Source: Auanema rhodensis
Taxonomy: Eukaryota > Animalia > Nematoda
Assembly (NCBI GenBank): GCA_964057225.1
Contig: OZ059898.1
Coordinates: 3,844,001 to 3,908,000, forward strand
DNA length: 64,000 nt
Direction of reading: 5' to 3'
Position numbers and translations under genes: made by a program. Under the pieces are notes generated by a model. The model was not told the origin of the DNA and did no database searches. It was given only the letters and a program-made list of their open reading frames with translations. Positions 2,316 to 50,537 of the stretch are shown piece after piece (position 1 is the first letter of the stretch; each line of letters opens with the position of its first letter).

Positions 2316-4966
2316 ATGACAATGAGTATATCCGGAGCGAAACGAAGGGTTCGACGCTGTTATTTTCAATTCAAATTTATTTTTAGGTTTCATTTGTTAT
2401 AAGAGATGAACATGAGAACCGCCACCGTTCAGCGATAGGAGCGCTGCAATATGATGTAAATACAAATAGGCTTTTTTCGGCTGGCAGTGATGCTATTATT
2501 AGAATATGGAAGGTTGACTCTTCTGAGTTTCCGAACAGTTCTGAGAGAAGCAATGAAAAAAAATCTGATGGTTTAGAGCATTCTGCTAGTTTTGTACAGA
2601 CAATGGAACATCATACTGATTGGGTTAATGATATGATACTATGCTGTGGAGGAAGATTTCGTATGATTCAAGATGGAAATAATTTTCAATTTTTTTGATT
2701 CAGTTTTATCAGCTTCCAATGATTCAACTGTCAAAGTTTGGAATGCCACAAAGCAATTTTGTATGTCTACCCTTCGAACCCACAAGGTTTTGTTCACTAC
2801 CTTATTACCTATTATTGTGATATAGGATTATGTAAGCTGTATGGCTTACGCGAAAGAACAGGAAAAAGCTGCTAGTGCCGGCTTTGATCAATCTATATAT
2901 CTTTGGGATATCGAAACGTTGACAAAGCTCACTTGTGTTAATAATACTGTTACAAGTTGCTTCTTGTTAGCTTATATGGCTCACTTAATTATTTTAGCTT
3001 CATCTCTAAACGGTAGCAAAGACAGTATTTATTCGTTAGGCATGAATGATACCGGAACAGTCGTAGCATCTGGCTCAACTGAGAAAGCTATACGTCTGTG
3101 GGATACACGCACTTGTCAGAAAATTATGAAATTAAGAGGACACACAGATAACATTAGAGCTATTGTTTTGAGTCAAGATGGAACTAAGGTGCTCAATCGT
3201 ATTCTTATTTGTTTTAATTTCCTTATATGAAGTGTATTTCTGCTAGTAGTGATGCAACTGTACGCTTATGGGATCTAGGACAACAGCGTTGTGTGGCAAC
3301 CTGTCTCGCTCACCAAGAAGGTGTATGGACACTTCAGGCAATCTTGTTCCTCTTTTATCGTTATATTAGTTATTACTCAACAGACTGATTCACTTTTCTC
3401 ATATGTGTATAGTGGGGGTCGAGATAAAAAAGTGTATCGTACACCCATTTGCGATTTCTCTATGAGTTGTTTGTTGTTTGAAGAGGATGCTCCTGTGAAA
3501 AAAGTACTTTCTAGGAAGCAGATGATTTAACTTATTTTCTAATTAAGATTCTAATAGAAAATCCATCACGACCAACCTCAATTTGGTCGGCTACATGGAA
3601 TTCAACTATTAAGCGGTAATATTTTTATTTAAATGATTGTAATATAAAGATTTGGTTTCTGATGGGGGATCAACACTAGTTGTTTGTACGATGAAGAAGA
3701 TCATACCCTGAACGTGATGTCTGCAAATATATCTTTGAAACCTGATATTATTTTACCCGGTGGGGCACATTTATTATATGTAATAATTGTTACATAATTC
3801 CAGGGGCACCATCAATCAAACATCATGTTGTTCTTAATGATAAAAGGCATGTTGTAACCAAAGACTCAGAAGGTTGTGTGGCTCTATACGATATTTTGGG
3901 TGGCAAGAAAATTGCGGAATACGGTAAAAGGCCAATGGAAGAAGTAGTTCGAGAACATTTTCGTAAAGTATTTGTTCCCAGCTGGTTCACAGTTGACTTC
4001 AAAAGCGGAGTAAGACTTGAAAACATAATAGAAAAATTCTTTCGTTTTCGATGTTACAAATTACCCTCGACGAGTCGGATGTGTTCTCTGCTTGGCTCTC
4101 TGCTAAAGATGCTGGTGTTGATGATTCAGACAATAAAAGTACAATCGAGAAGTATGAAAAAAAACAGAGATAAATTTCAGTTAATTATGGAGGAATGATG
4201 TTGAGATCTTTATTTGATAGATGGCCAAAATGTGATATGGGTATAGAGGGCAGCGAAACAAGTTTAGCAACTTCTGAATTTCTTCCTATTCCCGATCACA
4301 CCCCTCTTATAATATGGTATCATGAAATATCTTTATTTATGACAGCTTAATATTAACTTCTCTCAGTGAAGGAAATGGGAGACCTCTCTTTCGATTGCTT
4401 ATTAAAGATGCTATTAATGATACTGAGTCTGCTTTATTGGCAGAATACGTGCCTAGCTGGGTTGTTCAACAATCTTGAATATAAATAAAATGCAATTTTT
4501 AGGTAACAGATGTTGTGGAAAGAAATTTGTTGCCCAAGTTCAACAAGATGCCTTTTTTCTTACTACCTCATCCTAGCACCAATGTCAAAACTCCGAAAAA
4601 GTACGAAAAAAATTAAATCTAAAATTTTTATCAATTTATTAAGGGAAAGACTGTCTGCGACCGAAATGCTACAAGTGAGAAAAGTTATGGAGCACGTTTT
4701 TGAAAAAATTTTGAATGCTGTTGATAATCCTTTATGTTCGGAAAGAACAATTACCGTTACTATTCCATCGGATCTTGATCAACGTTTGGAGTTGTATTGT
4801 AACGAGCAGGTAATTCAATCTAAAATGCAAATATATCAATGCTATTGCAATAATATATATTTTCAAGAAATTGGACCCGGACATGGATCTGAGAACAGTT
4901 AAGCATTTTATCTGGAAACAAGGTGGAGACCTACTAATTCATTACAAAGCTATAAAAATGGCATGA
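2316..4966 (+). CDS. wdr-48: WD repeat protein 48 / UAF1 (activator of USP1/12/46), ~14 exons
   Basis: [91 protein letters not shown]. The model needs one GC donor and two non-AG acceptors. Confidence 0.95.
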
Positions 4967-5127
4967 TTTGTATGAATAAATTAAATTAAAGTGTGTGTGT
5001 TTTCTAATATGTATGATGTATCCTTGTATATAATATGTAAAACATGATCGATGTATATAGCATTTTGGGATATTAGCCCCTTATTTTTAATTTTTTTTAA
5101 ATGTATTTATATTAATTTGGTTACAGA

Positions 5128-7288
5128 ATGTCAAAATCTGAAAAGAAATGGGCAGTAGAAGATTTTCAAGTTTTTCCTCTTTATGTTTTATTAATTTAGT
5201 TTGTTTTATTGTAGGCCCTTAAACAAGAATTGATTTCGAATCCGAACGAAGCTCACTACATTAATGTTTTTAAACAGCTTATAGAAATCAAACAAGATCA
5301 TATTGACAGGTATTCTAGAATATCCATATTTGTGTTATTTTTTCCAAGTGATTGTTGGTTGGATTGCAAAGATCTCATTAAATGTTTATTAAAACAAAAC
5401 TGTTTTATAAATATGTTGGAGAACGAACCAGTAAGTAGGACAGTACTAACAAAAAGCAAATCAACGTAATTTTAGGAGCTGTTTAGAAGTGCTATCGAAG
5501 TTGCTCCACCTTTGGTTATCAGAGCAATAGTGGAGATGATTATTTCGGACCATTCAGTTTGTTTTGTTTTTGTGTGAGTATTAGAGAAGAATATTTTAAT
5601 AGATATATAACACTCTGACGAATTCTATCTGCTTCGCTTTTTTAGAAAGGATGAATGATGCAGAAACATCTGAATACGTAAAATTTGAGAACTGACTTGC
5701 TAACCAATAAAATTATTCTAGATTTCCACTTTAATCGCTCGACTTTGCACGAGGTCTGCTATGATTGACCATTTGCTTGATCAATTTGAAAAGAATATCA
5801 TATCTGATAAAAAGTTCAATTTCTATCAGGTTAGCAAAATAACCTCTTTTGTTGTTATTTTTTTAGATTTTACTTAGCTCAATACAATCTGGTACTTATG
5901 ATGAAAAGCTTTCACCAATATTCAGAGCTTTGAAAAATGAGATGCAAAGTAAATATATTATTTTTTCTAAATTACGGAGTAGGTCATAGGTTCTGATGTG
6001 TTGATGAGCTTAGCAGCTTTTGATATACTGTGTGACATAGCTATCTCGGGTGAACAAGGAGCTGAACTACTTATTGAATTTGATGTTCCGCAAAAGGTTG
6101 GATCTTCGTTAAAAAGCAAGCAAATATTTTTGTAGGCCTATGAAATCATGACGTCCAGTAGAGAATCGCCTGACGGAGGTTTTCTATTTTCTTGTAATCT
6201 TTTTTGTTTTGTTTTGTTTTCATTTATATTTCTATTTACAGCAGCGATAAAATTTTTTGGTTGCCTATGCCGTTGCCATCCCGAAGCTTTGATTAAGTTC
6301 AGTGAATTTCTTCCAATGATATCACACATGGTTTGTTCACTAATAATTCTGTTAGTTAGGTTATTTAGATAGCAAATTATGATTTATTGGATGCTAGCCA
6401 AAGAGTATTGGTCGTGGAAACATTTTGTCATGCTTCTTTTTCAAGCAAAGGAAAAAACATAATTTCTGAGCATTATGGTAGGCTTCTTATCCTAAAGCAT
6501 ACGATATTTACAAAATTATACTTTAACATATCTAAATTATATCTATTTCCATGATTTAAATTTATTCCTAACGTTTAAGTAATGGATTCATTTCAAAAAA
6601 GTTAAGATTCGAATCTAAAATCCGTTTGTTTTAATTAGTTTATGTATTATTAAGTGATATTTTTTTGAATTACAAATATTTCATATATCAAAAATTCTAT
6701 CTGTTCAAAAATGATTCTTCTCTTATTAGGTACTTTTCTCCCTGTGATTCTAAAATCTATTACAAATGCTTTAAAAACTGGACCAACCGAGTTGAAGGCA
6801 AGAACTTTGGATTCGTTAGCAATTTTATTGCAAAATGGTCTTTTAAATTTGATTAATATTAAATCATTATTGAAATTTGTAGGCGAAGATATATTATTAA
6901 ATAAATGGTTCAATCTTTTGGAAGGATTAGTCGAAGCGCTGGATTCGTTTCTATTAATGCCTTTCCGTGATACAAAGCGTGCAAGCTTAAATGTTCTGCT
7001 GGTATTAGCAACCCGTGATTTCGCCGTTCGTTCCTTGTTTACTCCCAGAAGTAAAATAGAAGAGTACTATTTAAAAGTTGTAATAAATACAAAATTAATC
7101 GTTTCAGATTTAAGTTATTCTTAACTACTACCGAGAGTGAAAATGATTGGGAAATTTACAAAATTAAACAAGACTTTGTTCAAGAATTGCTCAATAGAAA
7201 ATATTCATTTATTGATCCTACACTTCTGGAAAATTTCAAAATTCTGTTAAATGGCTATAAATACGAACCTCAAATAGCCATTGATTAG
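5128..7288 (+). CDS. 26S proteasome assembly chaperone PSMD5 (S5b)-like ARM/HEAT protein
   Basis: Spliced ORF of ~12 exons with motifs typical of PSMD5 (SDVLMSLAAFDIL, SRESPDGGFLF, AIKFFG, MPFRD); ATG follows a ttacag acceptor. Confidence 0.7.
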
Positions 7289-49453: not shown

Positions 49454-49700
49454 TTCACATCACTAATTATTTTTTAACTATATGACGGAAATTTACAATA
49501 GGTAAGAAGCTGAGAATGAGACAGAAAAATTCATATACTTAATGAATAGGCTCAATTTTATTAAAACGATCAAGCAGCAAACAATCGATCATCAATTATA
49601 CGCAGCAGCATATTATATTACAAAACAATACGATCAATGAGATCATTACAGATCAGCATTAACAAGAAATAAGCAACAGAAACAGATTGTATATAGCAAT

Positions 49701-50537
49701 CTACCAATCTTCTTCATTATCATACGCAAGATCGCAAGAACGAATCGTCTTCTTCTTCTTTTGCTCCACCTTTTTCTTCTCAATAGTAATTATCCCTGAT
49801 TTTGCTAACCTTCCCTCGAGAACCTGCAATTGAATGATATAATAAAGAAAGACTGCTTATGAAACCTCAGTAGTAAATTCATCTACACCACCCAAATCGT
49901 CAAAACCTCTGATGTAATCAATTGTTTGTTTGTCTTTTATCACAGCTATAGTAGGAATAACACGAATATTTAGACGAGTAGTCAAGAATTTGAACTAGAA
50001 CTAACCGAGATTAACTATAATTTTGAATAAAGCTAACCTTATCAGCGTTACATTTCACAAAACGAACATTTTGGTACTTCGAGCATAGTTTTTCAAAATG
50101 CTTGTCCACAATTTTGCATCTAAAAGAGAATACAGTGTTAGAATATTATTAAAGTTGTACCTCATATTGCCATCAAGATAAAATAAAGCTACTACATTAG
50201 AGCTCTTATCAGTAGCTTTAAAAAACTCCTTTTCATCAGCGAGTTCTTCGTATTTTCCGTGACCATTCATCAACATTTCCTTGATGAATATAATAACATA
50301 TGTTTTGAACCAATATCCTTACGTTTTTTTCCCTTTGAGCCTTTTTAAGCTCTTCAATTCTCTTTCTGCGAATAGATTCCAAATCATCTTCATCCAAATT
50401 TTCAAGCCAATAATAACAACTTTTAAATATTGCTAACGATTTTATTAATACCTGTTCATTTCCTGCTCGAGTTGTTCCTCGACTATTTTAGCAGCATGAA
50501 GAAGCTGTAAACCAAGTTGATCACCAAGAGCAGACAT
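49701..50537 (-). CDS. txdc-9: Thioredoxin domain-containing protein 9 / phosducin-like 3
   Basis: [64 protein letters not shown]. Confidence 0.93.

Follow-up and report, generated by a model that had tools for sequence, protein, structure and literature searches.

Introns ending in TG or CG in conserved genes of the nematode Auanema rhodensis

INTRODUCTION

The terminal AG of introns is among the most invariant of eukaryotic gene signals, and it is assumed both by gene predictors and by the programs that align RNA sequencing (RNA-seq) reads. Can natural introns be removed without it? The question is raised by a stretch of 64,000 nucleotides (nt) of the nematode Auanema rhodensis (contig OZ059898.1, positions 3,844,001 to 3,908,000 of the forward strand), here called the window, where four introns in the housekeeping genes wdr-48, vps-16 and txdc-9 end in TG or CG. 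Here we report that non-AG acceptors are real: RNA shows the removal of two of the four, for which the DNA bases are confirmed as well. Probably all four are ordinary U2-type introns whose 3' AG has lost its A at -2 (to T or C) in this lineage and which are still cut out at the ancestral site.

RESULTS

Four introns with a normal donor and a TG or CG end

Coordinates throughout are positions within the window, and (-) marks the minus strand. The four introns are:

wdr-48 intron 8: 3616-3661 (+), GT..TG, end TTTCTG, 46 nt, phase 2, junction TIKR|W
wdr-48 intron 10: 4010-4050 (+), GT..CG, end TTTTCG, 41 nt, phase 0, junction FKSG|MLQITLDES
vps-16 intron 7: 48430-48470 (-), GT..CG, end TTTTCCG, 41 nt
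txdc-9 intron 1: 50408-50451 (-), GT..TG, end TTATTG, 44 nt

An earlier note, made from the letters of this DNA, had placed introns with TG or CG ends at these coordinates and had described them as having a normal GT start, a retained terminal G and the modal length. The sequence agrees with both statements for all four introns (41-46 nt). The note had further suggested that any base is tolerated at -2; this holds for T and for C, and the four introns carry it no further than these two bases.

The donors are GTAATA, GTAAGA, GTATTT and GTATTA, so that each intron has a U2-type 5' end, and the AG expected of a U2-type 3' end is missing from all four (TG, CG, CG and TG). Shifting the cut positions within the allowed ambiguity turned none of them into a GT..AG intron. 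The next downstream AG lies 18, 24, 23 and 20 nt away, respectively, and in no case is it preceded by a U-tract.

Removal of the vps-16 and txdc-9 introns from mRNA

The introns of vps-16 and txdc-9 were judged by RNA and DNA contigs, and those of wdr-48 by homology and by their orthologues in a sister species. A search for sequencing runs found DNA runs of three studies and four RNA runs. From these, two RNA contig sets (runs X10 and X12) and two DNA contig sets (run X1 from 2019 and run X8 from 2024) were aligned to positions 45900-51800 of the window, which cover both genes:

vps-16 coding region: 46057-49453 (-), 21 introns, 20 GT-AG and one GT-CG, from RNA joints and constrained reconstructions
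txdc-9 coding region: 49701-50537 (-), 5 introns, four GT-AG and one GT-TG

The RNA contigs carry 26 joints over this stretch, 15 of which are individually listed. Fourteen of these are minus-strand GT-AG junctions. The remaining one (50406>50451) lies in txdc-9, skips 44 nt with a 2-nt ambiguity and is present in contigs of both RNA runs. It fits the GT..TG intron at 50408-50451; an AG that lies in frame 12 nt upstream and would shorten the intron to 32 nt is unused.

For vps-16 the 41-nt joint itself is among the 11 unlisted joints, and we used the end of a contig piece together with a reconstruction. The RNA contig piece stops at 48427, with zero depth on 48428-48460. The dinucleotide AC occurs both at 48428-9 and at 48469-70, so that a 41-nt skip is expected to show a left-shifted end at 48427. 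Upstream of this point the reconstruction was constrained by the removal of 307 nt by seven introns between 48428 and 49382, by an open frame and by the depth in each bin; in every compatible solution the last intron is 48430-48470. In the downstream part, only one solution fits the four introns between 47672 and 48268, and in it all end in AG. Precise removal from messenger RNA (mRNA) was thus found for both introns, in txdc-9 by a listed joint and in vps-16 by piece end and reconstruction. The tally for the two genes is 24 GT-AG introns, one GT-CG and one GT-TG.

Among the observations named in the earlier note as able to overturn its reading are transcripts that use neighbouring AG sites, and DNA reads with A at the -2 positions. 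The RNA contigs of vps-16 and txdc-9 do not use the next AGs. The DNA contigs, for their part, differ from the window at no position over 5.9 kilobases (kb), and both carry the window's bases at 48431 and 50409. Since contigs from both studies agree fully with the window, the -2 bases of these two introns are real and not assembly errors.

Apart from the splice sites, one unbroken RNA contig at 49383-49820 (-) runs from the 3' end of txdc-9 over a spacer of ~250 nt into the start of vps-16. This is compatible with an operon-like pair, although such a contig does not prove a single transcript.

Homology evidence for the two wdr-48 introns

The closest named proteins are those of Auanema sp. JU1783, with 91-96% identity in the exons that flank the junctions, followed by the more distant Heterorhabditis bacteriophora. 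We took JU1783 as the sister species and aligned wdr-48 to the longer isoform of its WDR48 protein (P0269). In this spliced alignment GC donors were allowed and non-AG ends carried an extra penalty of 10 points. The resulting gene model is:

wdr-48 coding region: 2316-4963 (+), 15 introns (12 GT-AG, one GC-AG, one GT-TG and one GT-CG), frame open throughout
wdr-48 intron 6: 3338-3383 (+), donor variant GC..AG, 46 nt, from the spliced alignment; GT in the JU1783 orthologue (locus L001, 9020)

The gene thus has three non-canonical splice sites among its 15 introns.

The alignment chose the intron at 3616-3661 despite the penalty, and the peptide across its junction, TWNSTIKR|W, is conserved among nematode homologues. 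An AG inside this intron, at 3649, would if used bring an in-frame TGA into the message. The peptide across the junction of 4010-4050 aligns without gaps to human WDR48 and in 152 of the 194 homologues that span it, and its cut position is unique. When non-AG ends are forbidden, the aligner takes in-frame AGs at 3679 and 4074, drops the residues WGINTS and MLQITLDE and reaches a lower score.

A UniRef homologue of WDR48 from H. bacteriophora (P0001) is frameshifted directly after both junction positions; for example, its segment QRMRALRTPTTK is an out-of-frame reading of KDAGVEDSDNK. These frameshifts may reflect either poor annotation or odd acceptors in H. bacteriophora too. We considered reading them as conserved non-AG ends and rejected this, the annotation being known to be poor (10.1101/225904).

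The JU1783 orthologues of the two wdr-48 introns end in AG

Locus L001 of JU1783 is syntenic with the window and carries prp-8 followed by wdr-48. The C-terminal part of prp-8 served as an unselected control with JU1783 orthologues:

prp-8, C-terminal part: 1-2105 (+), 11 introns, all GT-AG

The wdr-48 gene of JU1783 has 14 introns of 40-46 nt, and all 14 are GT-AG. The orthologue of 3616-3661 lies at 9294-9333 of L001 and reads GT..TTAAG; that of 4010-4050 lies at 9676-9717 and reads GT..CTTTAG. Both have the identical codon position and phase. The alignment with a sister species that the earlier note had proposed thus gives AG ends for both wdr-48 introns. All 25 introns of prp-8 and wdr-48 that the two species share are GT-AG in JU1783; in the window 22 of them are GT-AG, and the other three are GC-AG, GT-TG and GT-CG.

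As the JU1783 introns end in AG at matching position and phase, the non-AG ends of these two introns are derived, by A-to-T and A-to-C changes at -2, and the orthologues display the ancestral AG state. On this comparison of sequences, the two wdr-48 ends look like recent, tolerated point mutations in pre-existing introns and not like members of a separate intron class.

The intron at 4461-4502 (+) is additional in wdr-48 relative to JU1783 (15 introns versus 14), so that one of these close relatives has gained or lost an intron.

Acceptor choice in the window

The window is AT-rich (guanine plus cytosine, 31.6%) and gene-dense, and its introns are very short. We compared the four exceptions with a verified set of 46 AG-ending introns (span 124-50322), 41 of which were used for comparisons of base composition. 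The 46 introns are 38-58 nt long, with a median of 43 nt. Without exception they end at the first AG that lies 38 nt or more from the donor, where chance alone would produce ~12 violations of this rule. Internal AGs closer to the donor, at 37 nt or less, are passed over, even TTTTAG sites at 33-37 nt that look like good acceptors.

None of the four exceptions has an AG between 38 and 63 nt from the donor. Applied to them, the first-AG rule predicts introns of 64-65 nt, whereas the two that were followed in RNA measure 41 and 44 nt. As these lengths differ from the prediction, the cut in those two introns is placed without an AG.

The splice-site consensus of the window is otherwise loose. Donors are very weak, with GTT as frequent as GTA and T at +3 in about half, and acceptors are varied, with A at -3 (AAG) in 8 of 41. 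Against this background, a TTTY directly upstream of the end is found in three of the four exceptions (TTTC-TG, TTTTC-G and TTTTC-CG; txdc-9 has only TTATT) versus 13 of the 41 AG introns. The donor has A at +3 in all four exceptions versus 17 of 41 (p=0.04). The tract and the A at +3 are no more than suggestive as compensating signals. It had been proposed that the 3' site is chosen by distance from the donor together with a U-tract and a terminal G. AG-free choice with the G kept is what we see in the two RNA-checked introns; the distance ruler and the part played by the U-tract stay at the level of conjecture.

DISCUSSION

Relation to known systems

The class of mechanism at work here is already known. 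What is new is its natural, fixed and constitutive use in essential genes, several times within one 64-kb window and with AG ancestors that can be dated. According to Aroian 1993 and Zhang and Blumenthal 1996, as these are cited in PMC4484395, Caenorhabditis elegans splices at the original site after mutation of the AG, and a TTTC tract is sufficient. Those mutants resemble the present introns in that short nematode introns are cut at their original position, with a TTTC-type tract directly upstream. They are, however, laboratory alleles, often with reduced function, whereas the sites reported here are natural and fixed, belong to housekeeping genes, give the form assembled from RNA and always keep the G.

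Three natural non-AG acceptors have been described in C. elegans, TG in par-4, AT in ubxn-6 and GG in icd-2, as proximal sites preferred in the germline (Ragle et al. 2015, PMC4484395). Like our introns, they show a wild-type rhabditid nematode cutting at acceptors such as TG or GG, but they are tissue-specific alternatives beside a strong canonical acceptor, whereas here the site is the ancestral, constitutive one. No strong canonical acceptor of that kind lies within ~18 nt downstream of the four introns; the next AG is 18-24 nt off and in poor context. A survey of the whole C. elegans RefSeq set counted only about 11 introns with a good donor and tract and a non-canonical 3' end (PMC1557818). 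In mammals, rare conserved U2-type GT-TG and GT-AT introns are known, for example in ARS2 and DGCR2 (Sheth et al. 2006, PMC1557818). These likewise combine a good U2-type donor and a pyrimidine tract with a non-AG end, but are single introns conserved between species, unlike the four in 64 kb seen here, at least two of which are not conserved in JU1783.

Raised rates of non-canonical splice sites have also been reported for Heterorhabditis, Globodera and Meloidogyne graminicola (10.1101/225904, PMC7593179), which are comparable in their AT-rich genomes and short introns. Those reports concern GC donors or unvalidated predictions, and in Heterorhabditis the excess consists of GC donors and is an annotation artefact (10.1101/225904); the present introns are unusual at the acceptor, and for two of them there is support from RNA. 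For Auanema rhodense itself, a 2026 preprint describes programmed DNA elimination and a 181-megabase germline assembly (10.64898/2026.08.27.747507). Our literature search found no paper on non-AG acceptors in Auanema.

How such introns could be cut

If ordinary introns have lost their A at -2 as proposed, the cut position would be set by the distance from the 5' splice site and by the branch region. A short U-rich tract bound by nematode U2AF may co-define that position, the retained terminal G would be sufficient for exon ligation, and the normal splicing machinery would presumably suffice. Better-than-average donors, with A at +3 in all four introns, would complete the set of signals. Nematode U2AF binds a short UUUUCAG/R tract, and the last G of an intron pairs with its first G at exon ligation; a retained G beside a variable -2 base fits both of these properties.

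Several points weigh against this explanation. The statistics on compensating signals were computed on four introns, and the comparison with the sister species is limited to the two introns of wdr-48. RNA contigs represent the main isoform only, and all of the DNA runs may come from one laboratory strain. Both wdr-48 introns, whose support is from homology, are followed by in-frame AGs 18 and 24 nt downstream.

Alternative explanations

The last of these points leads to the possibility that wdr-48 is mis-modelled, its mRNA using the AGs at 3679 and 4074. The introns would then measure 64 and 65 nt, and WGINTS and MLQITLDE would be missing from the protein. Either AG would keep the frame, and the evidence on this gene comes from homology. 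Even so, MLQITLDE is near-invariant in animals, and nematodes conserve the W that follows TIKR. Introns of 64-65 nt would exceed the 38-58 nt range of the 46 verified ones, and the RNA-checked introns, of like layout, skip a next AG at 64 nt. With intron positions that are moreover identical in JU1783, we regard mis-modelling as improbable. Errors of assembly, or bases peculiar to a strain, at the -2 positions are more improbable still. Positions 3660 and 4049 lie outside the read-covered stretch, and every DNA run is flagged as a possible source of the assembly. Nevertheless, the contigs of 2019 and 2024 match the window throughout the 5.9 kb that includes 48431 and 50409, and four errors falling exactly on acceptor A's would be implausible. 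Removal by the minor (U12-type) spliceosome, or without a spliceosome, can be all but dismissed: odd termini are commoner in U12 introns (PMC1557818), but the 5' motif RTATCCTT and the branch-site motif TCCTTRAY are absent from all four introns, and nematodes have no minor spliceosome (PMC1557818 and established knowledge). In size, GT start and position the four are like ordinary introns, and the wdr-48 orthologues are GT-AG.

A different kind of alternative accepts the acceptors and explains them by a 3' splice-site code that is relaxed across the lineage, through a change in U2AF35 (uaf-2), Prp8, Prp18, Slu7 or Prp22 that admits any base at -2, with ~1-2% of introns being non-AG. Four cases fall within a single 64-kb window, and a GC donor occurs in wdr-48, the gene that holds two of them. 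The weak consensus at donors (T at +3 in half) and at acceptors (A at -3 in 8 of 41) would also suit such a code, as would the finding that JU1783 has no non-AG end among 25 orthologous introns. However, wild-type C. elegans already tolerates sites with a mutated AG, so that no change in the machinery is needed, and we consider a relaxed code unlikely. In its fullest form, with at least 1% of ~100,000 introns ending in TG, CG or GG, a length ruler and U-tract in place of the AG, and a change in U2AF35 or in the second step that is absent from JU1783, it is likewise doubtful. Ordinary U2-type introns with a mutated -2 base remain the probable explanation.

Consequences

Introns of this kind offer a natural system for asking whether distance, the U-tract or the terminal G decides where a very short intron is cut at its 3' end. 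They equally allow one to ask how far AG recognition is dispensable and how splice sites decay and turn over. There is also a practical consequence: if this genome is annotated with AG acceptors only, models of such genes will probably be broken or frameshifted. In wdr-48, conserved residues drop out of the model when only AG is allowed.

Other features of the window

An Rfam scan of the window found no RNA genes, and the C-terminus of PRP8 is the only part of a splicing factor that the window encodes. We also attempted counts of non-AG introns over the whole window from the letters alone, by open-frame joining, by dynamic programming on codon bias (for which all 16 end dinucleotides served as a control), by a forward/backward gain score and by the pairing of coding segments. 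Because donor and acceptor consensus are weak, these counts were dominated by noise; they did not recover the four known cases, and we claim no rate from them.

In prp-8, the intron at 1617-1658 (+) spans 42 nt without a stop codon and keeps the frame, and gene models built on open frames run straight through it. Homology (IITC|SFTPGS) identifies it as a GT-AG intron.

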